Virus record (IMG/VR): IMGVR_UViG_3300031344_000002
Location: 1 to 64,000 of that record
DNA: 64,000 nt
Strand: one strand, 5' to 3'
Position numbers and translations under genes: made by a program
Shown: positions 1,176 through 40,409 of the stretch, piece after piece
Layout of the letters: every line of letters starts with the position of its first letter
Numbering within the stretch: the first letter of the stretch is position 1
The notes under the pieces: model-generated
The model's input: the letters and a program-made list of their open reading frames with translations, nothing else
Database searches by the model: none
Told to the model about the DNA's origin: nothing

Positions 1176-2243
1176 TTATTTTTTTAATCCTGTAAATAAT
1201 TCTGCTTTAATTGTTGGATGACATTCATAATTAGTCAATTCAAAATCATCAATTGTTAAATTAAGAATATCATCAAGAGAATTTAATTCTTTCTTTATGT
1301 TCATTTGTGGTAAATCATATGGTTTTCTACTTAATTGTTCTTTAACCATTGGAATGTGATTCACATATATATGAGTATCACCACCAATCCAATTTGCAAT
1401 TCCGGGAATCATATTACATGCTTTAGCAAATATTATAAGTAATAATGACATAGAAGTAATGTTAAAAGGACAGCCAAGTGCTGTATCAACACTTCTTTGA
1501 TACATATTTAAATCGAGATAAAATTTAGGAATATTTGTATCGTTTAAATCCTGTAACCATTGTTCATCAGTGTCCCAATTCAATTTAAATTCGTCATAAG
1601 TCTGACCCTCATAATTTGCATAAATTTTAATTCTTTCTTTTAATGATAATGGTCTTACAATAAATTGATAAAGTAAATGACATGGTGCGAGAGCCATATC
1701 TTCAAAATCAGCAGCATTCCAAGCATTAATAATATGATAACGACTATATGGATTTGTTTTAAGACCATCTAATACATTTTTTACTTGGTCAACACCATTT
1801 TGATTACGCCATTGATAACCATAAACTTTACCTAAATCACCATAATTATAATCACCAATAACACAACCTTCTCCATTTTTTATTATTTCAATGAATTCTT
1901 CAATTGTTGGAATTATCGTCTCTTTTAATCCAAGAGGGGGATTATTTTTATTATATTCTTCAGCTTTCTTTAAATACCATCTATAAGCATCAGAATTCCA
2001 GATATTTACATTATTATCGACAAGATATTTTACGTTTGTATCTCCACGTAAAAACCATAAAAGTTCATGTACAATACCTTTCCAATACATTTTTTTTGTT
2101 GTAAGTAATGGAAATCCTTCTTGTAAATCCATTCTAATTACCGCATGAGATATACCAATTGTATTTGGCATATTTGCTCTACCACTTTCTTTCTCGACAC
2201 CATTAGCGAGAATATCTTCAAGTAAGTTTAAATATTCTTCCAT
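1176..2243 (-). CDS. thyA: Thymidylate synthase with two insertions
   Basis: FPLLTTKK, ELLWFLRG, LGKVYGYQWR, MALAPCH (catalytic Cys), YQRSVD..LG.PFN, GDTHIY motifs. Confidence 0.97.
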   Translation of the reverse strand: MEEYLNLLEDILANGVEKESGRANMPNTIGISHAVIRMDLQEGFPLLTTKKMYWKGIVHELLWFLRGDTNVKYLVDNNVNIWNSDAYRWYLKKAEEYNKNNPPLGLKETIIPTIEEFIEIIKNGEGCVIGDYNYGDLGKVYGYQWRNQNGVDQVKNVLDGLKTNPYSRYHIINAWNAADFEDMALAPCHLLYQFIVRPLSLKERIKIYANYEGQTYDEFKLNWDTDEQWLQDLNDTNIPKFYLDLNMYQRSVDTALGCPFNITSMSLLLIIFAKACNMIPGIANWIGGDTHIYVNHIPMVKEQLSRKPYDLPQMNIKKELNSLDDILNLTIDDFELTNYECHPTIKAELFTGLKK

Positions 2244-2254
2244 AATTAATTATT

Positions 2255-2527
2255 TTATAATAATTTACCAAATGCATCATCATTATTAATTTTCATTTTT
2301 CCTTCAGCAATTAATTGTTGTTTTGCTTTATCAAGAACCATACAACAAATATTTCCTTTATTTTCATTATGATATTTAATAAATTCCTTATGAATTTCAG
2401 TTGTAGTTAAAGCAATTATTTCTCTTGCTTCTTTACGATATTGTATAGCAATTTCATTATTAATTACTTTTCTACATTCTTTAATTAGTATTGTTTTTTC
2501 TAAATCCTTAATTAATTTTAGACTCAT
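2255..2527 (-). CDS. Hypothetical protein
   Basis: ORF in a tightly packed minus-strand operon with an A/T-rich start context. Confidence 0.65.
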   Translation of the reverse strand: MSLKLIKDLEKTILIKECRKVINNEIAIQYRKEAREIIALTTTEIHKEFIKYHNENKGNICCMVLDKAKQQLIAEGKMKINNDDAFGKLL

Positions 2528-2553
2528 AATTTTAAGTTTTTCTATATTAGTAA

Positions 2554-2868
2554 TTATGGATGTCCTTCATCTTTATATATTCCACAAACACAAGGCATAT
2601 CAAATTCAATTTCATTATTTTTCATAACAAAATTAATTGAACTTGTTTTATGATAAGGATTTTTAAGAACTTTTATGTTTTTGTATTTAAACATGACATC
2701 AGTTTCAAATTTAGGATTTTCTAACATTTTTAACCATTCAAATAATTCTGGTGAAGTTACAATTAATTTTAATTCATCTTTATTCTTTTCAAGAAATAAA
2801 TTTAATTTATCAACATTATTTTTATTTCTTTTATAAAATTTTAATTCGTGTATTTGATTATCATTCAT
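2554..2868 (-). CDS. Hypothetical protein
   Basis: ORF directly downstream of the repeat array in the same operon. Confidence 0.65.
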   Translation of the reverse strand: MNDNQIHELKFYKRNKNNVDKLNLFLEKNKDELKLIVTSPELFEWLKMLENPKFETDVMFKYKNIKVLKNPYHKTSSINFVMKNNEIEFDMPCVCGIYKDEGHP

Positions 2869-2901
2869 ATAATTGAATTGTTAATAATATTATTTCTTTT
2901 G

Positions 2902-3269
2902 GGTGTTAAACCCTTCCAATTTAGATTAGTTTCCACCCACCACTAGTTGATATTGTTACAAAACCTTGGTGTTAAACCCTTCCAATTTAGGTTGGTTTCC
3001 ACCCCATTTCAATTCCTGCCTCTACAATTGCACGGTGTTAAACCCTTCCAATTTAGATTAGTTTCCACCATCTTCAATGTTTCCTACCTCATGTTTATTG
3101 GGTGTTAAACCCTTCCAATTTAGATTAGTTTCCACCATAATCACCAATTTTTGAGCTATACAGATGCGGTGTTAAACCCTTCCAATTTAGATTAGTTTCC
3201 ACCCCTGAAGGAGAATATTTGAAGGGATTGGTTGGTGTTAAACCCTTCCAATTTAGATTAGTTTCCACC
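2902..3269 (-). CRISPR. Orphan CRISPR-like array: 6 x 36-bp repeats, 5 unique spacers (30,30,31,31,30 bp)
   Basis: Plus-strand repeat GGTGTTAAACCCTTCCAATTTAGATTAGTTTCCACC starts at 2902, 2968 (2 mismatches), 3034, 3101, 3168 and 3234. Spacers are unrelated to each other. Repeat ends are complementary (GGTG...CACC, AAAC/GTTT). Minus-strand form resembles type VI-B repeats. Confidence 0.85.
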
Positions 3270-3625
3270 CAATCTTGAATGAAATCCCTGATTTGCTCGT
3301 AGTTAAGACCAAATCTTACTTCAAAAATTTGCCAAATAAGTGAATATTTTACCCAAAGTCTGCCATTTTTCCAATCCTGCTGAAATAACCAACAATTATT
3401 ATTAGAATCTGGATGATATAAACCATCTAATTTATAATAAGTTATTTCTTTTTCACCAGTAATTTTAGCTACAGTGTTATTAAACATTTCAAATAAGAAA
3501 TCTGACATTGCTTTAGATTTATCATCCTTATTTACAATGGGTTTAAATTTGATTAATTCAAAAGTAGAATTATCTTTATCAATTTCAAACCCATCAGGTA
3601 CGTTAATCTTTATTTCTTTTTCCAT
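3125..3625 (-). CDS. Hypothetical protein whose C-terminus is encoded by the array repeats
   Basis: N-terminal MEKEIKINVPDGFEIDKDNSTFELIKFK motif, recalled from Bacteroidota phage proteins. VETNLNWKGLTP occurs twice (repeats at 3234 and 3168); stop falls inside the repeat at 3101. Confidence 0.8.
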   Translation of the reverse strand: MEKEIKINVPDGFEIDKDNSTFELIKFKPIVNKDDKSKAMSDFLFEMFNNTVAKITGEKEITYYKLDGLYHPDSNNNCWLFQQDWKNGRLWVKYSLIWQIFEVRFGLNYEQIRDFIQDWVETNLNWKGLTPTNPFKYSPSGVETNLNWKGLTPHLYSSKIGDYGGN

Positions 3626-3707
3626 ATTAATAATTTATTTAAAAGTTAATTTTATTTGTTTTTTATTTTATTATTTCAATTAAACTAAAATAATCGGTTT
3701 TCATAAT

Positions 3708-4085
3708 TTATCTATTATCTCCACTTCCATGTATTGTGCCTTGTTCATATCTTGATTTTAATTTTTCAATATTATATGCAGCAACATCTTCTAATTCAAT
3801 TCCCAGACTATCACACATTGAAGAGATATACCAAAGAACATCTGATAGCTCACTTTTTATTGCTTCTACATGTTCTTGAGTAATTATTCCACCATTATCT
3901 CTAATAATTTTCTTTATTTTACCTTGAACCTCACCTGCTTCACCTAATCCAAGACCATCATAAACAATAGATAATAATATTTTAACATCAATTGGTGTAT
4001 TGGGATGTTTTTCTAAAAATTTATCTAACGATATTTTAAAAAAATTTGCTTTTTTTTGATATTCTTTAAAAGTTGTTATTATCAT
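3708..4085 (-). CDS. mazG: MazG-like nucleotide pyrophosphohydrolase
   Basis: GEAGEVQGKIKKIIRD...ELSDVLWY...NIEKLKSRY...GSGDNR motifs. Confidence 0.9.
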   Translation of the reverse strand: MIITTFKEYQKKANFFKISLDKFLEKHPNTPIDVKILLSIVYDGLGLGEAGEVQGKIKKIIRDNGGIITQEHVEAIKSELSDVLWYISSMCDSLGIELEDVAAYNIEKLKSRYEQGTIHGSGDNR

Positions 4086-4380
4086 TACTCATTTTTTTAA
4101 GTATTCCTATTGTATTAATAATTTCTTGTTCCCCTTTATTTTGAACTGCTTCTATTTCGGCACTATAATCCTTTACTAATTTTTCATTAATTTCTCTAAT
4201 TTCTTTAATTTTATTTAATGCAAAACGTGCTTGAGAACCATATTCATCCAAATCAATGGATGAAATATTACCTCTTGATTCAGAATAATTTGTTTTGTCA
4301 TAGTTTTTTTTATTAGCATAAAATTCTAATGCTATTTTAAGCAATTCAATTAAATTTTCATAATCTTGAGTACTATTCAT
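4066..4380 (-). CDS. Hypothetical protein
   Basis: Overlapping, translationally coupled ORF in the operon. Confidence 0.7.
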   Translation of the reverse strand: MNSTQDYENLIELLKIALEFYANKKNYDKTNYSESRGNISSIDLDEYGSQARFALNKIKEIREINEKLVKDYSAEIEAVQNKGEQEIINTIGILKKMSNDNNNF

Positions 4381-4687
4381 TATCTTCTTCTAATTTATTG
4401 TTTTCAACAATTTGTTTCAAATCTTTAACTATCAATTGTTTTATTTTATTTATTATGTTTTGATTAATTGAATGATATCCAGTAATACAACTATCACCAA
4501 TTCTTATTTCTTTGCCAACACCATAATAATCTTCATAACTTTTATCTAAATATGGAATTCTAGTTCTAAAAACAATTTCAATTGAATTATTGGATAATAG
4601 TTTAATTAAATCATTAAAATCGTTAATATATTCATCTTTATCATAAAAGACATTATTATGAAATATATTATTCGTTATTTTTGTCAT
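4373..4687 (-). CDS. Hypothetical protein
   Basis: Overlapping ORF in the operon. Confidence 0.65.
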   Translation of the reverse strand: MTKITNNIFHNNVFYDKDEYINDFNDLIKLLSNNSIEIVFRTRIPYLDKSYEDYYGVGKEIRIGDSCITGYHSINQNIINKIKQLIVKDLKQIVENNKLEEDNE

Positions 4688-5018
4688 TTAATTGTGTATT
4701 TATTTTATCTTCAACAATTTGTTTCAAATCTTTAACTTCATTAGGATATAATGTAAATTCCTTACGAACTGAATGTGCTTTATTGTTATTTATTTTTTGA
4801 TGAAAATATTTGCCTTGAGATTCAGCTTTTTCGAATTCATCATATTTTTCAAAACTGATATTGCTATAAGAATATGTATGTCCTCTACTAAATGCAATAT
4901 AAAGTCTTTCATTTTTAGGAAAGTATGTGATTTTTAATATATTATCAGAATTAAAAACCGCTTCAATATAACCAATTGTATTATCTTTATCTTGAAATTC
5001 TTTTCGTTCTATAAGCAT
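4668..5018 (-). CDS. KTSC-domain protein
   Basis: S.NI...Y......LYIAF..G..YSY.NIS...Y..F..AESQGKYFH pattern. Confidence 0.8.
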   Translation of the reverse strand: MLIERKEFQDKDNTIGYIEAVFNSDNILKITYFPKNERLYIAFSRGHTYSYSNISFEKYDEFEKAESQGKYFHQKINNNKAHSVRKEFTLYPNEVKDLKQIVEDKINTQLNDKNNE

Positions 5019-5037
5019 TATTCATATTTTATGTATG

Positions 5038-5045
5038 CAAATGTA
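5038..5045 (-). promoter_or_regulatory. Bacteroidota sigma-A type -7 element (TACATTTG)
   Basis: Matches TAnnTTTG about 20 bp upstream of the KTSC start. Similar elements at 13701-13708(-), 17426-17433, 37119-37126, 53510-53517 and 58306-58313. Confidence 0.65.
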
Positions 5046-5073
5046 ATTAATTAAATATTAAAAAGCAAGAGTA

Positions 5074-5283
5074 TTATAATTTTTTAAAACCGACATCTAA
5101 ATCAAATTCTTTTATTTCTTGTTTAATTATATCTATCCCATCACAATCATTTACATATTTTGAATCTAAATTTTTTAGAATAATTTTACATGCGTCATCA
5201 ATATTTGATGCAACACAAATTTTATCATCATAAAATCCGATATGATACAAGCAAAATTCTCTAAAAACATATAATTTATTCAT
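5074..5283 (-). CDS. Hypothetical protein
   Basis: 69-aa ORF with a plausible start context. Confidence 0.55.
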   Translation of the reverse strand: MNKLYVFREFCLYHIGFYDDKICVASNIDDACKIILKNLDSKYVNDCDGIDIIKQEIKEFDLDVGFKKL

Positions 5284-5337
5284 AATTTTTTATTTTTCAT
5301 TAATCATATTTTAGAATCATCATTTATTTTAGAGTTA

Positions 5338-5487
5338 TCATTTATTTGTAAAATTTCTTTCATCATTTATATCTTTTTCAAGCAAAATTCTTATTCTTTT
5401 TGAAAGAGAATAACCATTTTTTTTACAATGTACTCTAAATTTTTCAATTAAAGAAATATCAATTCTAACATTTAACATTTTTTCCAT
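5338..5487 (-). CDS. Ribbon-helix-helix DNA-binding protein
   Basis: MEKMLNVRIDISLIEKFRVHCKKNGYSLSKRIRILLEKDI fits the RHH pattern; start moved to the Met at 5487. Confidence 0.7.
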   Translation of the reverse strand: MEKMLNVRIDISLIEKFRVHCKKNGYSLSKRIRILLEKDINDERNFTNK

Positions 5488-7099: not shown

Positions 7100-8220
7100 G
7101 GTGCTCCTATATTACTTAAATTTGTCGTTGGTATTATATTCAAACTACTTGCATTTTGACTGAACCATATTTTATTAAATCTTGTTTTTGTGTTTAGTTC
7201 GGTCATATCAGGAACTATTGATAAAATAATTTTTGAAAATAAATACCTTCTTTCATTTACAAATGGATAATCAACACCAATTCCTGTTAATGGGTCTACA
7301 TATCCTTGTGGTAAAATATCACGCCAGACAAGATTACCATTATTATCAATTGGTGTAGCATAATCAGGTATTGTTGTTATAATATCATATGAAGTACTAC
7401 CAGTATTAGCACTATCAAGTTCATTAGAAAAATATCTTAAAGTAAATGGAATAAATGGATTATATTTCCAATGAAGTGTACCTGTCTCTAAACATGTTGT
7501 TGAAATATAATATGTTTGTCCCGATTCTTGTGTTTGAAGAAATTCAGTTTTATTATAATTTATTAAATCACCATATACTGTATCTCCAACAATTAATGGT
7601 GTTGTATTTAATAATGTTTGAACAGGTACTATACCAGTATCCCAATAAGTATATTTAAGAACTTCTGTTGAACTTGGAATATATTTAGCATATAGAAATA
7701 GTTCGGTTATTGGAAACTTAAATGCATCAAAATATGTTGAAACATTAAAATCTTTTTTAAAGTTAAATGCATAAGTTTGTTCACCATATATATTATTAGA
7801 AAAACCTGCTGAAAATAATTCAAAATCATCTGGAGTTGCAATTACATCAAAATATCTTGCAAAAATAGATGAAGAAAGTTGTGCATGTTTCATTGATGGT
7901 TTAACTAAATAAAATTCAAATGAATTTTTTATTGTTTTAGAATTACCGCTAAATATTGGGGTCATAAAATCTTTAAATTTGGAATAATTATTTATTAATC
8001 CATTTAATAATGACATATATTCAATTCTTCCATAAATTCTATATATTGTATTTTCTTCTCTTTCCAAATTAAAAACATCTGTTTCATTAACATCATCATT
8101 AACATCATATCCTGTAAGTTCTGATGTATGGTTAAACAATTCAATTTTATCATAAGTATCTACATTGACAGAATTAGTATTTTTCTGACTACCGAGCAAT
8201 ATTTGAATTTTTTTGTCCAT
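7090..8220 (-). CDS. Putative virion structural protein
   Basis: Late motif at 8226-8234; beta-rich composition. Confidence 0.6.
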   Translation of the reverse strand: MDKKIQILLGSQKNTNSVNVDTYDKIELFNHTSELTGYDVNDDVNETDVFNLEREENTIYRIYGRIEYMSLLNGLINNYSKFKDFMTPIFSGNSKTIKNSFEFYLVKPSMKHAQLSSSIFARYFDVIATPDDFELFSAGFSNNIYGEQTYAFNFKKDFNVSTYFDAFKFPITELFLYAKYIPSSTEVLKYTYWDTGIVPVQTLLNTTPLIVGDTVYGDLINYNKTEFLQTQESGQTYYISTTCLETGTLHWKYNPFIPFTLRYFSNELDSANTGSTSYDIITTIPDYATPIDNNGNLVWRDILPQGYVDPLTGIGVDYPFVNERRYLFSKIILSIVPDMTELNTKTRFNKIWFSQNASSLNIIPTTNLSNIGAPCQ

Positions 8221-8328
8221 TTATTATAAATACCTTAAAAATTTTTTCTTGTTTTTGTAACATTTTTAATGGTATTTCGTATATAATAGAAAAATGATTC
8301 AAATTGTTTAACTTAAAACTGAAAAAAG

Positions 8329-8733
8329 ATGAAAAACTTAATTTATTTTATTCTTGCAATAACCTTACTTAGTGTAAGTTGTAGTAAAAAAGACGATGGT
8401 AATGTTACTCCTCCAGTAACTAAGCTACATAGTCAATTATCTCCCGATTCCCTATATATAGGTTATTGGCATTGTGATTCAACATATAGAAATGGTATGT
8501 TGGATTTAATTGATGATGTAAATTCCAATTTTAATTTTAATGACACTACGTGTATTGAAACCGATGATAATAATATAGGTGTGAATAATGTTTATGATAA
8601 TTGGACAATATCTGGAACTACTTTGAAATTAGATGTAAATAATCCAACTATATTAACTATTGTGTCACCACCTGCTAATGGTAAAATGGTATTATGTGAT
8701 GGTTGGAATACCCATTATTTGACTAAACGATAA
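8329..8733 (+). CDS. Lipoprotein with a lipocalin-like domain
   Basis: Signal peptide MKNLIYFILAITLLSVS-C, then SKKDD; LYIGYWHCDS resembles the lipocalin G.W motif. Confidence 0.75.
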   Translation: MKNLIYFILAITLLSVSCSKKDDGNVTPPVTKLHSQLSPDSLYIGYWHCDSTYRNGMLDLIDDVNSNFNFNDTTCIETDDNNIGVNNVYDNWTISGTTLKLDVNNPTILTIVSPPANGKMVLCDGWNTHYLTKR

Positions 8734-8785: not shown

Positions 8786-11113
8786 TTATATAATATTAAA
8801 GTCAACCAATAATTGCACACAATCATTACCATATATACCTTTAAACAAATAAGCTGTTGGTAATTCATCTGCGAGAATATTAGAATATGGTGAATAATCA
8901 TCCCAACCATATAAATAATAATGTTGTGGTGGTGTAATATAACCGCTTGGTTTTAAATTTCGATATTGATAATATTTATTTGAAACAGATAATTTTGTTG
9001 GATGATTTTTATAATATTTATCATATGAATTATAATCATGGTCATAACTATTCCATTTTCTAATATTAATACCTTTTATTGGAATTTGGCTTAATAATGT
9101 TAATTCTCCTGCTGGAATATTAATAAATGTTGTTTGAAATGCATCTCCTCTTAATATATTGGAGCTATCAGTTATTCCTGCAAATAATTTTTGATTATTT
9201 GGTTGAATAAAAAAATCGTCACTAGTATTTGGAGGACAATGATAAACATCAGCAACAACTTGAGTTCTATCTGGTATAGTAGGACTAAATGCCCAACCAT
9301 AACAAGGAAAACATAAACAAAAGTTTAACCATTGTGCACCAAAATATTTATTACCTTTATTTTTTGCTAAACCAGAATTATCAAAATGAATAACATTAGG
9401 TGCAAAATCGTATGTAAATTGACGAAGATTAGGATTTGTAGAACCAGTTGTAGGAGTACAGCCAGTAATATAATTTTGTTGGTCTGTTAGTTCCTTTTGT
9501 GTTATATAATCAGTACCCGCAGTTTTAAACCAAGAACCTGCTACTGAACCATAAACACTATTATCTGTTGTAAATATATTTTCAGTATTAGGATTATAAG
9601 GTATTGCTATTGGAGCACCAATTGCATGTTTTGTTGGGTAAAATTGAGCTACGCTATATACGCCACCACCAGTAAATGTATAATATTCTTTTCTCCATAA
9701 ATCATTATCTGGTATTCCAGTTGGTGAGTTAGTCGGATTAATTGATTTATCTCCATTTATAAATGTTTCATCATAATGTAATGGAACTTTTTGTGGTATT
9801 TTAAACCAACCCCTTGCTTTATATTGTGGATGGTCTCCATTATAATGTGTTGACCAAGAAGAATTTTCAGGTAAATCAGTAAGGTCAGGATATTTAATTA
9901 ATATCATACCAAAAAACTTAGTAAAAACACCTGATGTTGAACTATCATCAACAACTGTTTTTTCACCAGTTGGACTTGTTATTACTTTTACTCTATTACA
10001 TGGAATGTTTAATAAAAAATCACCATTAGTATTATATTCAACATATTCTGTTTTATCTAATTCTCTAATTTGACTATTTGGGTCGGCATTTACCCAATCT
10101 ATATCAATATCTCCATTAATATTAACAACAATTGGTACGTCAGTGGTATATGTAAATACACTAATAATTGGATTAGCTGTTCTATATGTTCTAATATCCA
10201 TATTATTTTGAATATCATTATCAGAATCAGATAAACTATAAAATCCAGAATTTGTTGTACTTGCATTGGGGTTACCAAAAATATCATACAATCCCATTGT
10301 CATGGTTGTGCCAAATATAGTGAATGATGATGATAATATTGCTTTTATTCTAAAATTCAATTGAGTTATACCGATTTCAAAATTCGTAGTATCTCCCCAA
10401 AAAGGAATTATATTGGCAGTAATTTCTTGTGTTTCAATATTTGGTAAATCTGTTAAATCAATTGCTGGTTTTACTGCAGATGCATTTTTAGTAAAAAGAT
10501 TTGGCGAATATCCGGCATTTATCATACTTGCAGGTGACATACTATATTTACCAATATCTGTAATATCAACACTAAGATGAACTGTTTGTGTACCTATTGG
10601 TACACCAAAAATCATATAATCACCAGAATCATTTGTTAATGCGGTATATTTATAATATTTTTTATAAACATTTAAAAATGATTCATTTATAACTAATTCA
10701 GGTTTTATTGGAAATGAACCGAAAGGTTGTTTGGGTTTATATGTATGAGTTTCCTGATTGAGTTCCGAAACACGTGGTAGTAAATTATATCTTTTTCCTT
10801 CATTATTTTTATCTCTAGGTGTTTTATATGGATAGATACTATATATATTACTATCTTCTGCATCTGCATCGGTTAATGGAATAAAAATACTTATTTTGGC
10901 ATTAGGAACACCAACGCCATCATTTGCTGTTACTCTACCAACCAATACACCATAATCAGCATTAAAATTTTGATAAGCATCTTCAGTACCAAGATTTAAT
11001 GTCAGAAATTCAAGTGTTTCAACATCTTGTTCAAGTTTTACTCTTATATATTTATCTTGACCTTTAGTATTTGTATTGCCTGTGCCTAAAAAAATTCTTT
11101 GTGATTTATTCAT
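8786..11113 (-). CDS. Putative virion structural protein (N-terminal carboxypeptidase-regulatory-like beta domain)
   Basis: GVLVGRV...GVPNAKISIF...TNDSGDYMIFGVP.G.QTVH pattern; late motif at 11130-11138. Confidence 0.6.
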   Translation of the reverse strand: MNKSQRIFLGTGNTNTKGQDKYIRVKLEQDVETLEFLTLNLGTEDAYQNFNADYGVLVGRVTANDGVGVPNAKISIFIPLTDADAEDSNIYSIYPYKTPRDKNNEGKRYNLLPRVSELNQETHTYKPKQPFGSFPIKPELVINESFLNVYKKYYKYTALTNDSGDYMIFGVPIGTQTVHLSVDITDIGKYSMSPASMINAGYSPNLFTKNASAVKPAIDLTDLPNIETQEITANIIPFWGDTTNFEIGITQLNFRIKAILSSSFTIFGTTMTMGLYDIFGNPNASTTNSGFYSLSDSDNDIQNNMDIRTYRTANPIISVFTYTTDVPIVVNINGDIDIDWVNADPNSQIRELDKTEYVEYNTNGDFLLNIPCNRVKVITSPTGEKTVVDDSSTSGVFTKFFGMILIKYPDLTDLPENSSWSTHYNGDHPQYKARGWFKIPQKVPLHYDETFINGDKSINPTNSPTGIPDNDLWRKEYYTFTGGGVYSVAQFYPTKHAIGAPIAIPYNPNTENIFTTDNSVYGSVAGSWFKTAGTDYITQKELTDQQNYITGCTPTTGSTNPNLRQFTYDFAPNVIHFDNSGLAKNKGNKYFGAQWLNFCLCFPCYGWAFSPTIPDRTQVVADVYHCPPNTSDDFFIQPNNQKLFAGITDSSNILRGDAFQTTFINIPAGELTLLSQIPIKGINIRKWNSYDHDYNSYDKYYKNHPTKLSVSNKYYQYRNLKPSGYITPPQHYYLYGWDDYSPYSNILADELPTAYLFKGIYGNDCVQLLVDFNII

Positions 11114-11220
11114 TTATTTATAGTTTTTCATAAATACTATCATCAAGAAATCCTTACTAATGTAAATTATTTTTAAAAAAATCTATGAGAATTTGATGAA
11201 AAATAATAATTTAATAAATT

Positions 11221-11649
11221 TTAATTGAAAACTTTATAAGTATTTTTAGATTTACTTAATTCATCTGCAATACTATTTTCTTTTCTGGGTATCCATTGAA
11301 GTGTAATAATATTTTTCTTTCTTAATGCTCTGTACAATTCTATTGCTTGATGTGCATATGGAATATATAATCCTTTCTTTATTTTCCATAATTCCAATGT
11401 TTGCATAATAACTAGTTTACTATCACCGTAAATATTAATTCTCACACCTATTTTATTTTTCATTAATTTAAAAATCATTATTAGTGCAAGATATTCCGCA
11501 ATATTACAAGTATTACCAATTTTTGCTTTATAAAATCTAGATTTTTTAAATTCTTTATCTTTACTTGTAATATAAACACCCAAACCCATGTTTCCGTTGG
11601 GATTCTTGGGTTCACAACTACCATCAAAATAACAATTATAGATTTTCAT
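11221..11649 (-). CDS. rnhA: Ribonuclease HI-like protein
   Basis: YFDGSC...NIAEYLAL...GDSKLV...WIPRKENSIADELSK catalytic D-E-D-D pattern. Confidence 0.9.
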   Translation of the reverse strand: MKIYNCYFDGSCEPKNPNGNMGLGVYITSKDKEFKKSRFYKAKIGNTCNIAEYLALIMIFKLMKNKIGVRINIYGDSKLVIMQTLELWKIKKGLYIPYAHQAIELYRALRKKNIITLQWIPRKENSIADELSKSKNTYKVFN

Positions 11650-11671
11650 ATATACTTATAAAAATATTTGA

Positions 11672-13681
11672 TTAAATATTAATACCAAAAGTTTTTTCAA
11701 ATTTCATGTTACCACAATCATAAATTTTATATATTTTATTGTCTAAAATGTTTTCACAAATTGATTTATTTTTATCATAATTTTTTAATTTAATAATATT
11801 TCCTTTTCTAAAATTAAAACGATGCTGTCTTAATTTTTCATTTATATTAAAATATGTATATGTTGGTTCATTAACACTAATCAATTGAAATCCTAATTGT
11901 TTATATAAATTACCTTGACTATATCTTCTATCAGCAAAAGATATTATATTTTCGGGTTGATATGTATTTATAAAATATTTTAATAATTTACTTGCACCAC
12001 CAGTTATTTTAGTGTTTAGTTTATTACAAAATCTATTTAAATTATAATAATTTTTATTATTTTCGTGATTACCTAATCCAATTCTCATTTTTTCAAAAGT
12101 CATAATCGACACCAATTCATTATTATAAAATAATCCAATTTTAATATTACTACCAACAAAACCTTGTAAATGATTGTTATTTAAAAAACTATGAATTAAT
12201 TCATTATCATTAATTTCTTTAATTTGACATTTACGAGCAAAGATTTTATTCTCAATAATACCTAATTTAGATTTTATAATACTTTTAATAATTTCTTTTT
12301 TATGTATCCATTCATCTTCAAAAATGTGAAGTAATTGAATTCCTTGTTTTTCACATTCAACTGTTTTATTTAGATGATAATTTTTATCCTTAAATAATTC
12401 TGAATGCCAATATAATCCATTAAATTCGATACCTAATTTATAATCAGGAAGATAAATATCAATTTCTTGTTTATTTTTTAATATTGGTATGTTTTTTATA
12501 ATTGTTTTAATATTTAATTTATTATTAATAAAATCACGAATTTCATTTTCTAATATCGATGCATTTTCAGAAATGGGATTACATTTTGTACAAATATTTT
12601 CATGTTTATTGAAAATAAGTCTTGAATATAATAATGATTTAGAAATTTCAAAATAATTATGAATTTTACAATAATTTTTAATTATAACAAAATGATTATT
12701 AATTTTTATATCGTTTGAATTAATATTAAGTAAATTTGAATATTTTTCTTTAAAATTATCATTGATTACGTTGTGTATTTTATTAATTACATCTATGGAT
12801 TTAGATGGATTATCTACACCATATTTTAGTATGGAAGTTATTTTACTTTTATCTCTATTATTATAATTTTCATCACCATATCTTATTTTTTTTGTATTTT
12901 TTACATCATCTTTATATTCTTGAGTACTACTATATGACGTATGATTATATTTTTTTAAATTTGTTTGTTTTATTTTTTCTTTAACTTTTTCATTTTGAAT
13001 TGAATATTCAACGCCATATTTTTTTAAGTTAGTTTGTTTTGTTTGTTCTTTAATTGTTTCGTTTTGAATTGGATGTTCAACACCATATTTTTTTAAATTA
13101 GTTTGTTTTGCTTTATTATTAATTATTTTATTCTGCATTGGATTTTCAACATTATATCTTTTTAAATTAGTTTGTTTAACTTTTTCTTGTTGAGATTTTA
13201 ATTTAAGATGATGTTCAACACCATATCGTTCTAAATTAGTTTGTTTACTTTTTTCTTTAATACTATCTAATTGTTGTGGATGTTCAACACCATATTTTTT
13301 TAAATTAGTTTGTTTTATTTGTTCTCTTTTTTCTTTAGAAAGTAATGTATATTTAAATCCAAAATTTTTCATTGATGTTTTTTCTCTTTTGATTTTAATA
13401 TTATTGTCTTTTCCAATACATTGCATTGAACAATATTTTGAAAATCCTTCACTAATTTTTTTAAATTTAACTGGTTTACCACATATTACACAAATAGGCG
13501 GTTTGGATAAATCATTTAATATTAAATAAAGCATTGCACCAAATGAAATATTATAGTTTTTAAATTTGTTATAAATTAAAACATATAAATTATAATAATT
13601 TTTTTTAAAAAACGATTCTGTTAATCTTCTTTTAATAATAATATTATCATTTTTTACGATTTCAAGTATTTTTTCCTTCAT
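11672..13681 (-). CDS. Free-standing putative homing endonuclease with KxTNLKKYGV repeats
   Basis: CxxC motifs, about 9 repeats of 23 aa, EIDIYLPDYKLGIEFNGLYWHS nuclease-like core, C-terminal IYDCGNMKF. Confidence 0.75.
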   Translation of the reverse strand: MKEKILEIVKNDNIIIKRRLTESFFKKNYYNLYVLIYNKFKNYNISFGAMLYLILNDLSKPPICVICGKPVKFKKISEGFSKYCSMQCIGKDNNIKIKREKTSMKNFGFKYTLLSKEKREQIKQTNLKKYGVEHPQQLDSIKEKSKQTNLERYGVEHHLKLKSQQEKVKQTNLKRYNVENPMQNKIINNKAKQTNLKKYGVEHPIQNETIKEQTKQTNLKKYGVEYSIQNEKVKEKIKQTNLKKYNHTSYSSTQEYKDDVKNTKKIRYGDENYNNRDKSKITSILKYGVDNPSKSIDVINKIHNVINDNFKEKYSNLLNINSNDIKINNHFVIIKNYCKIHNYFEISKSLLYSRLIFNKHENICTKCNPISENASILENEIRDFINNKLNIKTIIKNIPILKNKQEIDIYLPDYKLGIEFNGLYWHSELFKDKNYHLNKTVECEKQGIQLLHIFEDEWIHKKEIIKSIIKSKLGIIENKIFARKCQIKEINDNELIHSFLNNNHLQGFVGSNIKIGLFYNNELVSIMTFEKMRIGLGNHENNKNYYNLNRFCNKLNTKITGGASKLLKYFINTYQPENIISFADRRYSQGNLYKQLGFQLISVNEPTYTYFNINEKLRQHRFNFRKGNIIKLKNYDKNKSICENILDNKIYKIYDCGNMKFEKTFGINI
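12790..13385 (-). repeat. Coding tandem repeat (about 69-bp unit, K-Q-T-N-L-K-K-Y-G-V)
   Basis: Degenerate in-frame repeats inside 11672..13681; boundaries approximate. Confidence 0.85.
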
Positions 13682-17462: not shown

Positions 17463-19046
17463 ATGGAAAATATTAAAAATTTTTTTCTTACCAACAATAA
17501 ATCTGGGTATAAAACCAATGAAAAATGGTTAAATATTAATCATAATGATTTATATTTAAATATAATTCATTTTTCGACAAATAAAAACATTTTATTTGTC
17601 GAAAAAATTTATTTGTTTATTAATAATTTAACTGATGTTCCCAGATGCCCTATTTGCAACGAATATGTTAAATTTATTGGAACTTTAAAACGTGGATATA
17701 ATAAATACTGTTCAATAAAATGTTTAAATAAATCTGATGAGCATAAAAATAAAATAATTTCAACATTTCAAAATAAATATAATTGTAGAAGTCATAATCA
17801 GGTTGATGAAATTAAAAATAAAAAAAGAATAACATTAATTAATTCTTATGGCGTTGATAATCCAATGAAGAATAATAATATAAAAAAAAGACAAATTAAT
17901 TCTCTTATTAAAAATTATGGTGTTGATAATCCGATGAAAATTAAATCAGTTATTGAAAAAAGAAATAAAAATATTGAAATTGGTGAAGAATTAAATATTA
18001 AAAGAATGTTAAATAGAATTACTGATAATACTATTATATATATTGGGCATAATTTAGCTGAAAATAATAATGTTAATTTTCATTGTTTGAATTGCAAAAA
18101 TGATTTTAAAATAAATTCTAATTTATTAACATCACGAATTTCTAATAATACTACCATTTGTACTATTTGTAATAAAAATAAATCATTTTCTGAAATACAA
18201 AAATCGTTAGAAAATTTTATTACATCATTAAATATTAATTATGAATCAAAAAATAGGGATATTTTAAATGGATTAGAAATTGATATATATTTACCAGAAC
18301 ACAAATTAGGTATTGAAATTGATGGTTTATACTGGCATAGTAATAAATTTAAAGACAAAAATTATCACCTTAATAAAACTAATTTATGTGAACAACAAGG
18401 TATACAACTACTTCATATCTTTGAAGATGAGTGGGTTAATAAGAAAGATATTGTTAAATCTATAATTAAAAGTAAATTAAGTATTATTGAAAATAAAATA
18501 TTCGCAAGAAAATGTCATATAAAAGAAATCGATTCATTAATTTGTAATAACTTCTTAAATGACAATCACATACAAGGTAATATTAATTCTAAAGTTAAAA
18601 TTGGTTTGTTTTATAATAATGATTTGGTATCGGTTATGACTTTTGGTAAAAAGAGAGTTGCTATGGGTAATAAAACCAATATTGAGGGAGAGTATGAGAT
18701 GCATAGGTTTTGCAATAAACTTAATACTCAGGTTGTTGGTGGAGCAAGTAAGTTATTAAGTTATTTTATAAAAACCTATTTACCAAAATCAATTTTAACA
18801 TTTGCGGATAGAAGATATGGTCAAGGTAATTTATATAAACAATTAGGATTTAATTATATAAAAAATACCCCCCCCAATTATTGGTATATTTTACCGGGAG
18901 AATTGAAAAAATATTATAGATATTCATTCAGAAAAGATGTATTAGTTAAACAAGGATTTGATAAGACCAAAACAGAAAATGAAGTAATGATTGAAAGAGG
19001 ATATTTGAGAATATATGATTGTGGTAATATGAAATTCATATATTAA
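17463..19046 (+). CDS. Free-standing putative homing endonuclease (paralog of 11672..13681)
   Basis: Shared C-terminal half: EIDIYLPEHKLGIEIDGLYWHS, QGIQLLHIFEDEW, FADRRY, IYDCGNMKF; fewer YGVDNP repeats. Confidence 0.75.
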   Translation: MENIKNFFLTNNKSGYKTNEKWLNINHNDLYLNIIHFSTNKNILFVEKIYLFINNLTDVPRCPICNEYVKFIGTLKRGYNKYCSIKCLNKSDEHKNKIISTFQNKYNCRSHNQVDEIKNKKRITLINSYGVDNPMKNNNIKKRQINSLIKNYGVDNPMKIKSVIEKRNKNIEIGEELNIKRMLNRITDNTIIYIGHNLAENNNVNFHCLNCKNDFKINSNLLTSRISNNTTICTICNKNKSFSEIQKSLENFITSLNINYESKNRDILNGLEIDIYLPEHKLGIEIDGLYWHSNKFKDKNYHLNKTNLCEQQGIQLLHIFEDEWVNKKDIVKSIIKSKLSIIENKIFARKCHIKEIDSLICNNFLNDNHIQGNINSKVKIGLFYNNDLVSVMTFGKKRVAMGNKTNIEGEYEMHRFCNKLNTQVVGGASKLLSYFIKTYLPKSILTFADRRYGQGNLYKQLGFNYIKNTPPNYWYILPGELKKYYRYSFRKDVLVKQGFDKTKTENEVMIERGYLRIYDCGNMKFIY

Positions 19047-29738: not shown

Positions 29739-32267
29739 ATGGCTGATGATGGTAGAACAAAAGCAATGAAAGAACTTCTTGGATTAACTAAGGAGTTACA
29801 AACCACATATAAGAAGAATTTAGATATTGAAAAACAAGTAGCTGATTTACAAGAAAGAAGAAGTGAAAGACAATCACTTATTAATCAATTACAATTAAAT
29901 TTTAATGATTTAAATGATAAACAAAAAGAAGTTTTAGATAAGTTAATTAAATTACAAATTACTGAATATAATAGTTTAAAAGATTTATCAAAACAGCAAC
30001 AATTAATTAATGAACAACTTCAAAAAGAAATAAAAACCAGAGAAAAGATTGTTGACTTAGCAAATGGGTTAGCTTCTGCTTTAAAACAAACTTGGACTTT
30101 TTTACAATCACAAGATAAAATTATTAAAAGTACTATTCTTAATCTCGGAATGTCAGGTGCTAAAGCAGATATGATGAGAAATTCATTTGAACAATCTGCT
30201 GGTTTTGTAGCAAGATTAGGTGGAAGTCTTGATGATGTTCAAGGAATAATGGAAGGATTTGCAGATGAAACAGGTAGAGCACGTGTTTTATCTTCAGATA
30301 TGGTAAAAGATATTGAAATGATTGGTAAAGGTACTGGTCTTGGAATTGAAGGAGCTACAAAACTTGGTGCTCAATTTGAATTAATGGGTATTGATGCTAA
30401 ATCGGCAAAGGATTATGTTCAAGGTGTTGTTGATACTTCAGAAAGAATGGGTGTTAATACAACTAAAGTACTTAAAAATATAAGTGATAATTTTAAAAGA
30501 TTACAAGGATATACTTTTCAGCAAGGTGTTAAAGGTTTTGCTCAAATGGCAGAATATGCTGAAAAATTTAAAATTAGTATTGATGCTGCATTAAATGCTG
30601 CGGACATTGGAAGAACACTTGAAGGTGCAATTAATATGGGAGCACAATTACAAGTTATGGGTGGAAATTTTGCAAAAATGAATCCATTTGATATTCTTTA
30701 TAATTCACGTAATAATCCAGAACAATTTCAAAAAGATATTGCTTCAATGACTAAAGGTATTGCAACTTTAAGAAAAAATACTGATGGTACATTTCAAAAA
30801 TTTATTAGTCCTGCTGATATGGATAGACTTACTCAAGTTGGTAAAGCATTAGGTATTAGTGCTGATGAAATGAAAGCAATGGCTTTAAGACAACTTGATA
30901 TAACCACAATGGCTGATAAATTACAAGGCATGGGTTTAACTGCCCGTGAAAAAGAACTTATTCAAGGTGCTGCATTTTTTGATACAAAATCTGGTAAATA
31001 TCAAGTTATGCTTGCTGGTGAAATGCGAGATATTAATACTTTAACTAGAGGTCAAGCAGAAAGTTTTGTTAAACAAACAGTTAGTTTAGAAGAACGTGCA
31101 AAACAAGCACAAACATTTGATGAAGTATTAAAAATAACAATTAATGAATTAAAAGCTGCTTTATTACCAATATTAAAAGGTGTTAATAAAGTTCTTGAAT
31201 TTGTAAGACCAGTAGTAGATGGATTAAGTAAACTTGCTGGAAGTGGTTGGGGTGGAGTTGTAGCTGCAGCAAGTATATTATTAAGTGCTGGTCTACTTTG
31301 GAAAGTTGTTTCAAGTAGTTTATCAAAAGCATTAACAAATTGGGGAGAAAAATTAGGAGAAAAAGGTATTGGTGGAGCTATTGGTGGTGCATTAAAAGGA
31401 AAAGGTGGCGCAAGTGGTGGACTTACTGATGTAGTCGGTGGTGGTACTAAAAAAGGTATTAGTGGTGGAGCAGCATTTGGAATAGGTGCTGGTATTGGTG
31501 CTGCTGCATTAGGTGTTGGTGCTGGTATTGGTGTTGCTGCTGTCGGTATTAGTAAACTTGCAGATTCTATGAGTAAATTAACACCAGAAAAAGCAAAAAT
31601 ATTAAAAGATATTGTTAAATCATTGAGCTGGGTTGTAGGTATTAGTGCTGCACTTGCTGGTGGTATAATTGCTATTGGTATGGCATCTACATCAGTAGCT
31701 CCGGGATTAGATATGTTAGCACTTGCAGCATTAGGTATAGGTGCTGGTATTGGAATTGCTGCTGCTGGTATTGGATTTATGGCAATGGGGTTAGCTAAAT
31801 TAGTTGAATCAGCAAAAGGAGCGGGACCAGCTATGTTAGAAGTTGGGGCAGGTATTGCTGCAATATCATTAGCAATGATGGGATTTACTTTAGGTGCATT
31901 AGGATTTTTAACATTCGCAGCAACAATGCATACAATAGCAAAAAATGCTGATGCTATGTCTAAAGTAGGTGATGCATTTAAACAAATTAGTACAGTAATG
32001 CATGGTAATAAAGATGATTTTATTGCAGTTCAAAATGCGGTTGAAAGTATATCGAAAATGAATACTAAGGGTGGTGGTATGTTAGCTGATTTAGCTACAC
32101 TTTTAAAATCTCCATTAAAAGTAGAATTTGCTAATGGTGGTCAAGTTACATTAAAAAATGATGTAACATTAGATATTGATGGTAATAAATTTATGCATAA
32201 AGTTTATAATACTGTAGTAGCTATTGAAAAACAACAAGCATTAAAACAAGGTAAAGCAGGTAAATAA
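29739..32267 (+). CDS. Tape measure protein
   Basis: Coiled-coil N-terminus, long helical A/G-rich body, hydrophobic Gly/Ala-rich C-terminal segments; follows the frameshifted chaperone. Confidence 0.85.
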   Translation: MADDGRTKAMKELLGLTKELQTTYKKNLDIEKQVADLQERRSERQSLINQLQLNFNDLNDKQKEVLDKLIKLQITEYNSLKDLSKQQQLINEQLQKEIKTREKIVDLANGLASALKQTWTFLQSQDKIIKSTILNLGMSGAKADMMRNSFEQSAGFVARLGGSLDDVQGIMEGFADETGRARVLSSDMVKDIEMIGKGTGLGIEGATKLGAQFELMGIDAKSAKDYVQGVVDTSERMGVNTTKVLKNISDNFKRLQGYTFQQGVKGFAQMAEYAEKFKISIDAALNAADIGRTLEGAINMGAQLQVMGGNFAKMNPFDILYNSRNNPEQFQKDIASMTKGIATLRKNTDGTFQKFISPADMDRLTQVGKALGISADEMKAMALRQLDITTMADKLQGMGLTAREKELIQGAAFFDTKSGKYQVMLAGEMRDINTLTRGQAESFVKQTVSLEERAKQAQTFDEVLKITINELKAALLPILKGVNKVLEFVRPVVDGLSKLAGSGWGGVVAAASILLSAGLLWKVVSSSLSKALTNWGEKLGEKGIGGAIGGALKGKGGASGGLTDVVGGGTKKGISGGAAFGIGAGIGAAALGVGAGIGVAAVGISKLADSMSKLTPEKAKILKDIVKSLSWVVGISAALAGGIIAIGMASTSVAPGLDMLALAALGIGAGIGIAAAGIGFMAMGLAKLVESAKGAGPAMLEVGAGIAAISLAMMGFTLGALGFLTFAATMHTIAKNADAMSKVGDAFKQISTVMHGNKDDFIAVQNAVESISKMNTKGGGMLADLATLLKSPLKVEFANGGQVTLKNDVTLDIDGNKFMHKVYNTVVAIEKQQALKQGKAGK

Positions 32268-33571: not shown

Positions 33572-36500
33572 ATGGCTGATATTAATGGAAATTCAAGATT
33601 ATTTTTAAGTGGGGAACAATTTAGAAATCAATTAATACCACGTAATTTATATAATCTTGATAATGAATATGAATCAACTGATGAACTTTCTCTTAGAAAT
33701 AAAAGTAAAGTTGCAGATTCTATTGCCAGTATTTTAGCAGTAATTCCACAATATCAACATATAAATCCAGATAATAGTTTACTTTCAAGAATAGATGGTA
33801 ATACACCATTAACTGAAATTGGTACAAGAATGTTAGGGCAACAAATGTTTTATAATTCAGTGTCACATATTGCTCAACAAAATTTACCTTCAATTGATTT
33901 TTCTAATATACTTAAAGGTAAAAGTCCTTTTATAAAAAATGTTGATTTGACAATTACAGTAAAAGACCAAGATAGTAGTTCTTTATTAGATAAAGTTGGC
34001 GGATTTATAGGTAAAACATTTTTTAATACAAATGCAATTGGTACTCCAGACCCATTTAATCCAAGTTCAATTAATACTGATTATATAAAAAATAGTGGTA
34101 AGGGTCAATTAGCATATTTTTATGATTCAATAAATTTGAATGTATATAAACAAATTGGACCTGATGATAGTAGTGATACCATTATTAAGTATGCACCAAA
34201 AGGACATGAAATTCAACAACGTGTTAATATTACTAGTAATTGGAAATATTTTAATTTTACTGAAAAAAATGCATATCCTTATTTATATAAACCAAGTGGC
34301 ACATTTACTCCAAGTTCTGAAAATTATGCAAATACTGATGAAAGAATTTCATATTCAGATTTAACAAAATCCAATACCATTCAAGAATATGCACCAAATC
34401 AACAATTTATAGAAGATAATTTTGGTGTTATAAATAAATCTCCAATTAAAATAAATATAGAAAATTTTGTTGATGATAAATCAGATATAACAACAGATGA
34501 TATTCAACATAAATTAGTTTGGGGTAGAGATGGTATTAGTAGTGATTCTAAAGGTTATTTATCATCACTTCATGGTGACACTAATGATGAAATAAATGGT
34601 TTAAATTCAAACGATTCAGGAGATATTACTAAATTTAAAATAAATGGTGGATTATTAGAATATACAAAAAATTTATTAAATGCAAGTTCTGGATATTTAG
34701 TTGATATTACAAGAAAAGTATTTACAGAAGGTAATAAAATAATTGGATTTAATGGTTCACCATTATGGCAAGCACCGAATGAATTAAATGCATATGTTGT
34801 TGCAAATGATATAGTTAATAAAACAGGTGTACGCCAACATACTATGGTAGACCAATATGATAGATTTGCAAAAGCAATAAGGTATATGGGAAATGTGGTA
34901 TATGGTGGTAATCCAAATTCTGTTATTTATAAATCAGTAATTCCAAAAATTCATCCAGAATGGGATAAAAGCAATACAGATTTAAATTATAAAAACATGA
35001 TGTTTAGTATTGAAAATCTTGCAATTGTTGCAATTAAAAAGGATGATAGTTATGGCACTATTGATGATGAATGGAATACACCAATACCATTAAGTGAAGT
35101 TGGACCATTTAGTGGACGTATTATGTGGTTTCCACCATATGATATACAACTTAATGAAACAGCAAATGCTAAATATGAATCCACAGTAATGGTTGGTAGA
35201 AATGAACCAATGTATAATTATATGAATTCAGAAAGAACAACAACACTTAGTTTTACATTACTTATAGATTATCCAGAACAATTAAGAAATTATATTGGCG
35301 AAAATCAAAATAAAAATATTGCAGATTTTTTCGCATTTGGTGGTAATAGTATACCTGAAAAGAAAATTGAAGATTTAAAATTACATTTAAAACAACTTCA
35401 AGATAAAATTTCTCAAATAACTGGTCCAACAAAACAAGCCGATGTTGCACCAATAAATGTACCAGAAATAAAAATATATTTCCCTAATGATATGCCAACA
35501 GATAGTCAAATTAATACAATTATTGAAGATATGTATAATAATCCACTTCATTATGAAATTAGAGATGGCTGTATTTCGGAAAATGATGGTAATGGTTTTG
35601 GATTAAATGATAGTAAAAAACATGGTGTTTATGACGTTGTTGGTCTTAGTGCAAATTCAACAAATAATATATTTGTTCTTACTGGTACTTCAATATATTC
35701 TCAATATAATGTGTCTAATTTAAATAATGATTTAAATAAAGCATTATCGGATGTATATAGTAATCCTGATAATAGAAAATATTATGATATTACAATTGAT
35801 GGTGGTTCATCAAAACTATATAAAGGTAAAGATGAAACTGCATATAATATTGCACTTGGTAATAGAAGAATAGCTGCAGTAAAACATTTAGTTGAAGAAC
35901 GTTTAAAAGCAATTTTTAAAGTAAATAATGTTCAAACTGAATTAGGAATTAATATTATATCAAATCTTAGTACTGGTAGTGCTGGTAGTAGTGTGGAAGG
36001 TGCTGAAGCAAAAAATATGTCTTTAAAACCAATTAAAGAAGAAAGACGTGCATCAATTAATATTAAAAAAAATAATAAAAGTGTTGACCCAAAACAACAA
36101 ACAGTAAATATAAATCAACAACAAAATATTAAAAAAATACAAGATGATATTACTGCAACAGAACTTTTACTTAAACAATATTCAAATCCTACTTTTAATA
36201 CAAGAGAGGATGCAATATTAAATGGATTTGAATCAATAAGTAAAAATAATTATTATCCTGCATTTCATACACAAACACCAGAGGATTTTCATAGACGTTT
36301 AACTTTTTTACAACAATGTACAAGACAAGGTTCTGCAAAACATTTTAATTCTGAAGTTGATGCAGCAGGTACATTAAGAGCTAGAAATTCAGTATTTGGT
36401 AGACAACCAATTTGTATAATGAGAGTAGGTGATTTTATGTATACAAAAGTTATTATTGAAAATGTTACAGTAGATTATAATGAAACTACGTGGGATATGA

Positions 36501-38914: not shown

Positions 38915-38915
38915 T

Positions 38916-40363: not shown

Positions 40364-40409
40364 ATTAATTAAACGAAAAAATAAGAAATAAACTAAAAAT
40401 TAATAAAAT

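Follow-up and report, generated by a model that had tools for sequence, protein, structure and literature searches.

A cas-less, CRISPR-like phage array whose first repeat doubles as the translated end of a conserved gene

Arrays that phages carry without cas genes are normally seen as borrowings from the CRISPR loci of their hosts. In the viral contig Ga0265316_10000013 (218,381 bp; IMG/VR record IMGVR_UViG_3300031344_000002) the repeat of such an array is instead the translated end of a gene of the phage's own. The window analysed here is the first 64 kb of this contig, the array occupies positions 2902–3269 on its minus strand, and the gene that runs into it is referred to as the leader gene. 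The last 36 nt of the leader gene are the first repeat of the array, an arrangement that recurs throughout a large family of phage genes. Taken alone, the conclusion that this is a CRISPR-type array anchored on the gene is highly probable. The longer chain of events, in which a gene-anchored mini-array is filled in trans and transcribed into guide or antisense RNAs, with a host effector as their user, is tentative: its probability is put at about 0.42.

The array itself is exactly as an earlier note on this DNA had read it, with six 36-bp repeats and spacers of 30, 30, 31, 31 and 30 bp, and the minus-strand repeat sequence given there, including its complementary ends (GGTG/CACC and AAAC/GTTT), is correct. 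With up to three mismatches allowed, the repeat occurs exactly 6 times in the 64 kb, against 0 occurrences in 100 dinucleotide shuffles. Near-identical repeats of 23–50 bp alternating with unique spacers of similar length are the generic mark of a CRISPR array, and the window array has both. The window repeat is predicted to form an end-to-end hairpin of −8.3 kcal/mol. Five of the six repeats are identical; the copy at 2968–3003 deviates at two positions and, a point that had been overlooked, is the repeat of two other arrays of the same phage that lie outside the window. The parts of the module, from the gene towards the distal end of the array, are:

3125–3625, minus strand: leader gene ORF (open reading frame) as read here, 166 amino acids (aa)
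3270–3350, minus strand: 3′ part of the leader gene directly upstream of the first repeat, which would act as the array leader
3234–3269, minus strand: repeat 1, gene-proximal; also codons 120–131 (VETNLNWKGLTP) of the leader gene
3204–3233, minus strand: spacer of 30 nt, gene-proximal and presumably the newest; no exact IMG/VR match outside the array
3168–3203, minus strand: repeat 2
3137–3167, minus strand: spacer of 31 nt
3101–3136, minus strand: repeat 3
3070–3100, minus strand: spacer of 31 nt
3034–3069, minus strand: repeat 4
3004–3033, minus strand: spacer of 30 nt
2968–3003, minus strand: repeat 5, a variant with ACC AAC in place of ACT AAT
2938–2967, minus strand: spacer of 30 nt, distal and presumably the oldest
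2902–2937, minus strand: repeat 6, the distal end of the array
2869–2901, minus strand: trailer of 33 nt, from the last repeat to the ATG of the next gene of the operon

The earlier note had described a plain Cas-less array and missed the ORF that enters it (3625→3125), and with it the translation of the first repeat. Residues 1–131 of this ORF (3625–3233) are the conserved protein, of which residues 120–131 (VETNLNWKGLTP) are encoded by the first repeat (3269–3234). The last 35 residues are read-through: translation passes the 30-nt spacer and the second repeat, after which a 31-nt spacer shifts the frame and a stop codon follows inside the third repeat. No frame other than this one is open through the repeat. 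Elsewhere in the same genome, a scan of IMG/VR with the 3′ half of the repeat located two further arrays at ∼153 kb, of 6 and 4 repeats; in front of each stands a leader-gene paralogue (84–85% amino acid identity) that ends in its own first repeat:

L003 (a stretch of the focal contig), 8085–8452 and 9502–9737: the two further gene+array modules, with 8 more unique spacers

In the first of these arrays the distal repeat is degenerate (…AACATA). Among the three leader-gene paralogues the ratio of non-synonymous to synonymous substitution rates (dN/dS) is 0.20–0.23, a sign of purifying selection, and the leader gene is thus a real protein-coding gene.

The leader protein belongs to a large family. 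Its 46 close homologues (45–100% identity) all lie on metagenomic phage-like contigs, and all 46 terminate in W[VI]ETN..WKGLTP, after which comes a variable tail. Searching 1.84 billion representative proteins with a profile extends the family to 858 clusters (50% identity) at E ≤ 1e-3, nearly all of them with proteins of 100–150 aa that terminate where the profile does. The most conserved position of this superfamily is T-P, which corresponds to ACACC in the repeat and is present in 101 and 95 of 111 proteins, respectively; in 14 of the 111, read-through adds another copy of the protein's own C-terminal motif, exactly 10 residues further on. At the DNA level ∼30 distinct loci were fetched, containing 51 distinct spacers. 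In all ∼30 the gene's own last 36 nt are the repeat, and most carry 2–6 copies, with some relatives having only the single repeat at the gene end. Spacer lengths are 30 nt (41 spacers), 29 nt (5) and 31 nt (5), and all spacer sequences differ. Even the distant members L051, L052, L053 and L054 have the gene-end repeat, though the repeat sequence itself is quite different there. The genomes concerned extend from jumbo phages down to smaller ones that carry RusA, Sak, ANT and terminase genes. That the repeat is the 3′ end of a conserved gene, and that gene and array form one widespread module, had likewise escaped the earlier description.

On the 148-kb contig L051 a shortened form of the gene (∼96 codons) is present in five tandem copies, with 1–3 repeats each, that are fused into a 760-aa ORF (10001–12283), and a gene for an IS605-type TnpB (Cas12f1-like_TNB) lies 9 kb upstream of the tandem modules. 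Foreign variants of the repeat occur singly in arrays that are otherwise uniform, at 2968–3003 of the window and at 10975–11240 of L016; the L016 array mixes three repeat variants, one of which differs from the window repeat by one base. Such intruders suggest that arrays, or co-infecting phages, exchange repeat-spacer units with one another.

The repeat evolves as a translated sequence does. Across 32 distinct genes its variation is synonymous (positions 4, 10, 13 and 28, and Leu codons TTA/CTA/CTT), conservative (V/I, K/R/N) or confined to a variable dipeptide, a signature of translation. Superimposed on this is a preference for particular nucleotides. The Lys codon of the repeat is AAG in 20 of 23 cases, compared with 75 of 463 elsewhere in the gene (p=1e-12), and the final Thr codon is ACA in 29 of 32 cases, compared with 46 of 167 (p=2e-11). 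Seven bases (G26, G27, T30, A32, C33, C35 and C36) are invariant in 25 repeat variants. Codons 20–45 positions upstream of the repeat are also oddly fixed in the family: Leu is CTT in 25/27, Ile is ATC in 22/27 and Val is GTT in 22/22. The codon bias, the invariant bases and the fixed upstream codons indicate that the 3′ end of the gene is dual-coded, and the pattern of substitutions points to a repeat that is probably under peptide and nucleotide constraint together. RNA structure does not appear to be part of this constraint. In the focal clade the repeat can fold end-to-end (−8.3 to −10.9 kcal/mol), and the paired ends to which the earlier note drew attention are specific to that clade: over 25 variants there is no consensus structure, and no covariation either, the window hairpin finding 65.2% of cells paired, compared with 66.2% in shuffles, with one compensatory pair. 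A hairpin joining leader and first repeat, as in Cas13 systems, is predicted no better than in shuffles (z-scores −0.1 to −1.65).

Sequence searches with the leader protein in Pfam, PHROG, NCBIfam, PADLOC and PDB gave no match. An AlphaFold (AF2) model built on an alignment of 111 sequences is predicted with confidence (predicted local distance difference test, pLDDT, 92.3; predicted template modelling score, pTM, 0.71) and has, after an N-terminal hairpin that is variable, one helix, a sheet of four strands and two further helices. In this model the C-terminal TP and the first residues of the tail form the final strand. Foldseek found nothing in PDB at E ≤ 0.001 with the pLDDT-92 model (best E=0.21, template modelling (TM) score ≤ 0.26), and an earlier pLDDT-68 model had no match in PDB or BFVD at E ≤ 0.001. 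No conserved catalytic-looking residues are evident in the family alignment. The protein could be a factor that binds the leader or the repeat, an RNA handler, an anti-defence protein, or a protein that has nothing to do with the array. Its N-terminus is one of at least three that are interchangeable within the family. This 'KINVPDGFEIDKDNSTFELIKFKP' module is encoded by the only stretch of the DNA searched that has a match among GenBank phages, ∼100 nt at window positions 3453–3565, which is 73–76% identical to MT774389.1 at 9303–9417 (crAss-like phage cr116_1, from human faeces), where it is unannotated. Otherwise, neither relatives nor spacer matches came up among GenBank phages when 9 kb were compared by megablast and the three arrays by blastn.

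The arrays bear the marks of growth in the CRISPR manner. Within one array the repeats agree even where they vary freely from array to array, which implies recent copying. Growth is polar and the distal repeat tends to decay, as in CRISPR arrays generally: degenerate distal repeats are seen in L003, L016, L021, L027, L041, L053 and L054. Beyond the last repeat there is typically a short tail rich in Lys and then a stop codon (PDK*, PDKK* or PGKK*), the median distance to a stop being 5 codons after the last repeat compared with 10 after the first; this looks like the original end of the gene, displaced by insertions. In a strain that shares 99.4–99.7% identity with the focal phage, one array is short of exactly the two units nearest the gene, and a syntenic 223-kb relative has three different spacers, with none in common. 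Identical spacers in all related phages had been named beforehand as a sign of a repeat unrelated to CRISPR; the spacer content in fact differs between relatives. As coding sequence the spacers make little sense, with in-frame stops in 20 of the 51, the same frequency as in the other frames.

Three spacers have a visible origin. In relatives L009, L011 and L021 a spacer is a 30/30 copy of DNA of the same phage 1.1–2.9 kb downstream, and in each case the identity stops exactly at the spacer boundaries. Exact protospacers are thus seen for three spacers of relatives and, in IMG/VR and GenBank phages, for none of the window spacers. The ORFs matched are:

L011, 11287–12087: ORF matched by a self-spacer
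L009, 2610–3053: ORF matched by a self-spacer
L021, 12805–13314: ORF matched by a self-spacer

One of these ORFs is homing endonuclease-like (GIY-YIG) and two are without any family match; the L009 protospacer sits 10–39 nt upstream of the start codon of the next gene. In 3/3 self-protospacers, a small sample in which chance alone would give this result with a probability of 1/8, the array strand reads as the reverse complement of a co-directional ORF's coding strand, so that the array transcript would be antisense to the mRNA. Nothing consistent emerged as a protospacer adjacent motif common to the three (n=3). A consensus assembled from mixed strains could make a spacer directed at a sibling strain look like a self-match. 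When all 51 spacers were compared with all fetched loci, self-matches were the only ones and there were no cross-phage matches. For the focal phage, of which ∼84 kb was read (the 64-kb window and ∼20 kb around the other two arrays), none of its 13 spacers matches the DNA read. These spacers have a G+C content of 35.5% compared with 26.1% for the phage (P=0.0004), and so look foreign, derived from the host or from other elements.

Identical repeats, degenerate distal ends, turnover between strains, exact fragments and stops within spacers are together most simply generated by a ruler-type integrase that duplicates 36 bp and inserts ∼30 bp. The following scheme is proposed. The array takes its first repeat from the last 36 nt of the gene (12 codons with an invariant ACACC end), and would have its leader in the 3′ part of that gene. 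New units would enter beside the gene by means of an integrase with a 36-bp ruler and inserts of ∼30 bp, each insertion duplicating the gene end and moving the stop codon that the gene once had to the array's far end. This integrase would most likely be a host Cas1–Cas2 working in trans, much as type II-C Cas1–Cas2 serves a cas1-less type VI-B array in Flavobacterium. Transcribed with an early nucleotide-metabolism operon, the array would yield spacer+repeat RNAs, most probably guides or antisense RNAs against other genetic elements, acting with an RNA-reading partner in trans; the favoured candidate for this partner is a host effector of the Cas13b kind. That an array can do without an integrase of its own has a precedent in Flavobacterium columnare, in which the II-C Cas1–Cas2 fills the VI-B array in trans. 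How cas1-less VI-B arrays are filled is still open for most species (PMC8092290).

A number of results weigh against this scheme. In 40 of the 44 window ORFs of at least 150 aa Pfam detects no Cas domain, which upholds, at the Pfam level, the earlier statement that the window has no cas gene. Nor is a cas gene linked to the array where relatives' flanks are concerned, and cas13b was not seen in either place. No host CRISPR locus with the phage repeat was found in 185,579 species genomes, scanned with a pattern of two spaced copies of the repeat's 3′ half; this pattern would not catch canonical VI-B repeats and, being limited to the phage-type repeat, rules out host-identical repeats rather than a related host repeat. 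Its sole match was another phage-type gene+array, at a contig end in a metagenome-assembled genome of Melioribacteraceae. The anti-repeat that would mark a type II array is missing: there is no tracrRNA-like one (trans-activating CRISPR RNA), in that no complementary stretch longer than 13 nt occurs in the 64-kb window or within ∼10 kb on each side in seven relatives. No gene family co-occurs with the module in ∼26 loci with flanks, and RNAalifold returns no consensus structure across 18–25 repeat variants on either strand. An exact scan of IMG/VR (2.9 million viral contigs, including the phage's own 218-kb contig) with the five window spacers finds only the array itself, and GenBank phages contain no match to them; the comparison of the window spacers with viral databases that had been suggested earlier thus yields no exact target. 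The exact self-matches in relatives would be self-destructive in combination with a collateral RNase or a DNA nuclease. Finally, 36-bp repeats and 30-nt spacers are constant across very diverse phages, which would not be expected if the integrases of varied hosts had built the arrays.

It is possible, though unlikely, that this is a bona fide type VI-B array, with host Cas13b binding and processing the repeat and the phage reprogramming Cas13b against competitors or host RNAs. The resemblance in geometry seen by the earlier note agrees with published values: VI-B arrays have 36-nt repeats and 30-nt spacers and are transcribed from the leader (PMC13187072; PMC8092290). Like the VI-B arrays of Bacteroidota, the phage module combines 36/30 geometry and probable leader-to-array transcription with the absence of adjacent cas1 and cas2. 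Both have a conserved leader-distal repeat end, ACACC in the phage module and ACAAC in VI-B; in F. columnare the VI-B and II-C repeats share the leader-distal end GTTGT, which is ACAAC on the transcript (PMC8092290). The end-to-end folding of the focal clade's repeat and the antisense orientation of 3/3 exact protospacers in relatives would also fit. However, what Cas13b recognises is a hairpin into which the whole repeat folds (PMC13187072), and across 25 variants of the phage repeat that hairpin is neither conserved nor covarying. The phage module differs further in being without cas13b or csx27/28, in having a translated first repeat that evolves as coding sequence and a protein-coding leader, and in its inconspicuous leader-repeat hairpin, while its self-matching spacers would set a collateral RNase on the phage's own infection. 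The 185,579 genomes hold no host array with the 3′ half of the repeat, and comparison with repeat families, proposed earlier as a check, produced no Rfam CRISPR repeat family (gathering threshold; E up to 10). Since the hairpin is unconserved, cas13b unseen and both a host locus and an Rfam match absent, the array is not filed as VI-B, and that label, offered earlier, is not established. The repeat may have some likeness to the Bergeyella Cas13b repeat (GGAA..., ...TTGGA.GGGT...ACA.C). The module works in the manner of 36/30 systems and may be serviced by them.

A different possibility, about as doubtful, is that the 3′ end of the gene is a decoy that mimics a leader-repeat junction, a CRISPR RNA (crRNA) handle, or both, with the spacers as by-products. 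The module could then be a sink that draws host spacer integration into many phage genomes, or a source of guide-less crRNA-like RNAs that soak up an effector. It is early-expressed, cas-less and often multicopy (3 copies here and up to 5 in tandem in L051), some of its spacers come from the phage itself, and single-repeat genes exist. An RNA of leader plus first repeat, when over-expressed, lowers Cas13b defence ∼1000-fold (PMC13187072), and Racrs are solitary viral repeats (PMC10651486; PMC11656645). With such repeat RNAs the phage module shares the lack of a useful guide, and the end of its gene, taken together with the first repeat, is laid out like an extraneous crRNA. Racrs, however, are solitary and mimic host repeats, whereas most phage modules carry spacers that turn over, and no host repeat was found for them to mimic. 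Own-phage matches account for only 3 of the 51 distinct spacers among the DNA at hand, the focal spacers are compositionally foreign, 0/5 window spacers match the phage's own 218-kb genome, and the hairpin is unconserved.

The small protein might alternatively recognise its own gene end, as DNA or RNA, and build, process or use the array Cas-free, its output being, for example, antisense regulators of phage, host or rival transcripts. In favour of such autonomy, which is nonetheless improbable, gene and array are never separated across 858 clusters, no other gene co-occurs, and the 36/30 geometry holds across very different phages and environments. The predicted fold is confident and previously unseen (pLDDT 92; best PDB match E=0.21), and relatives' spacers are antisense to neighbouring genes of the same operon. 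Against it, the core of 96–135 aa is without a recognisable catalytic motif and the repeat offers no RNA structure for a protein to hold. No precedent is known for Cas1-free precise spacer insertion. With similarly low odds, in a self-contained, Cas-independent system a protein of new fold might recognise its own gene's end, capture 30-nt fragments beside it and employ the spacer+repeat RNAs as programmable antisense regulators, or the module might be the evolutionary source of the 36/30 repeat class found in type VI-B loci of Bacteroidota. Least credible by far is an origin unrelated to CRISPR, in which the repeats would be phased iteron- or centromere-like binding sites for the upstream protein or a coding tandem repeat. 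One frame is indeed open through the repeat, and a gene followed by direct repeats at a fixed 66-bp period resembles the layout of rep or par genes with their iterons. This reading is largely refuted by the exact 30/30 captured fragments with spacer-coincident boundaries. Iteron-like sites are contradicted by these fragments and by the within-array identity of repeats at positions that vary between arrays; a coding repeat, the alternative weighed in the earlier note, is ruled out by the 31-nt spacers that break the frame, the stop of the ORF in repeat 3 and the stops at background rate in 20 of 51 spacers. The five signs of growth listed above make both versions very unlikely.

Reportedly, spontaneous 'neo-CRISPR' arrays, described by Nivala et al. 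in 2018, arise by off-target integration by Cas1–Cas2. A gene-anchored array filled in trans resembles them in that a non-CRISPR sequence is duplicated at repeat length for each spacer inserted and so seeds an array. Neo-CRISPR arrays are sporadic, whereas the phage module uses the same gene end across 858 clusters, which, with the nucleotide conservation at the junction, suggests selection rather than accident. Viral mini-arrays (Faure et al. 2019; Medvedeva et al. 2019) have host-identical repeats and mostly target related viruses (PMC11656645), and huge phages carry cas-less arrays with a median of six repeats each (PMC7162821). The phage module is similarly short (1–6 repeats) and cas-less, with spacers that differ between related viruses. 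In contrast with viral mini-arrays, its repeat has no host counterpart in the scan, a difficulty for the proposed scheme, and is the coding end of a dedicated gene, and its exact matches are to its own genome.

As far as the literature searches reach, there is no description of an array that has its leader and first repeat in the translated end of a dedicated, superfamily-wide phage gene, nor of a repeat of this kind with no host counterpart or of exact antisense copies of a phage's own neighbouring genes. The module offers an example from nature in which CRISPR repeat and leader are dual-coded, as well as a defined, testable integration site for in-trans spacer acquisition. It also brings into view a large uncharacterised protein family with a confident new predicted fold and an obvious nucleic-acid partner. 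Phages that carry exact antisense copies of their own neighbouring genes point to regulation or conflict via guide-like RNAs. Autonomy, if the module has it, would make this a programmable system of a new kind.

The focal phage is a jumbo phage with a G+C content of ∼26%. Its Pfam picture is that of a T4-like myovirus, with a tail sheath, a gp19-like tube, a baseplate protein and a RecA/UvsX-like protein, and the window further encodes a DnaB-like helicase, a 5′-3′ exonuclease and many glycosyl- and methyltransferases. The module lies in a block of genes of one direction:

1176–5018, minus strand: co-directional operon holding the module (ORF map and Pfam)
5018–4668, minus strand: KTSC-domain gene, followed by two 104-aa ORFs
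4085–3708, minus strand: MazG, followed by the leader gene and the array
2243–1176, minus strand: thymidylate synthase ThyA, preceded by a 104-aa and a 90-aa ORF

The earlier note had assigned the array to a KTSC-MazG-thyA mRNA. Strand and surroundings support this: no terminator-like site is present in 2200–5400 and the block is tight and co-directional, which makes co-transcription of the array with the operon plausible. Co-transcription itself we infer. A scan for sigma-70 promoters gave hits at chance level only.

A 1068-aa ORF at 33572–36778 was considered as a hidden Cas13-like effector and rejected; it has no HEPN-like layout and sits in the tail/baseplate block, where it comes after a tape-measure-like protein. 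The tape-measure-like protein (842 aa; 29739–32267) contains a Gly/Ala-rich tandem repeat region (31473–31542) in which local G+C reaches up to 34%. A second tandem repeat of the window, at 12944–13325, has a period of 69 nt (23 codons; 5.5 copies, 77% matches) and lies inside the ORF 13681→11672 (669 aa, DUF7487); it is probably coding and unrelated to the array. Two DUF7487 proteins, at 11672–13681 (minus strand) and 17463–19046 (plus strand), stand on either side of the tail sheath and tube genes. The one at 17463–19046 also has REase_MTES_1575/Vsr-like endonuclease and Mom-like domains, suggesting a role in DNA modification or as a nuclease. A tRNA-Met (CAT) is called at 61392–61480; at 89 nt it is long for a Met tRNA. 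The dense block of glycosyltransferase and TylF/methyltransferase genes at 37406–46231 could be a cluster for surface sugars or for the modification of DNA or protein.

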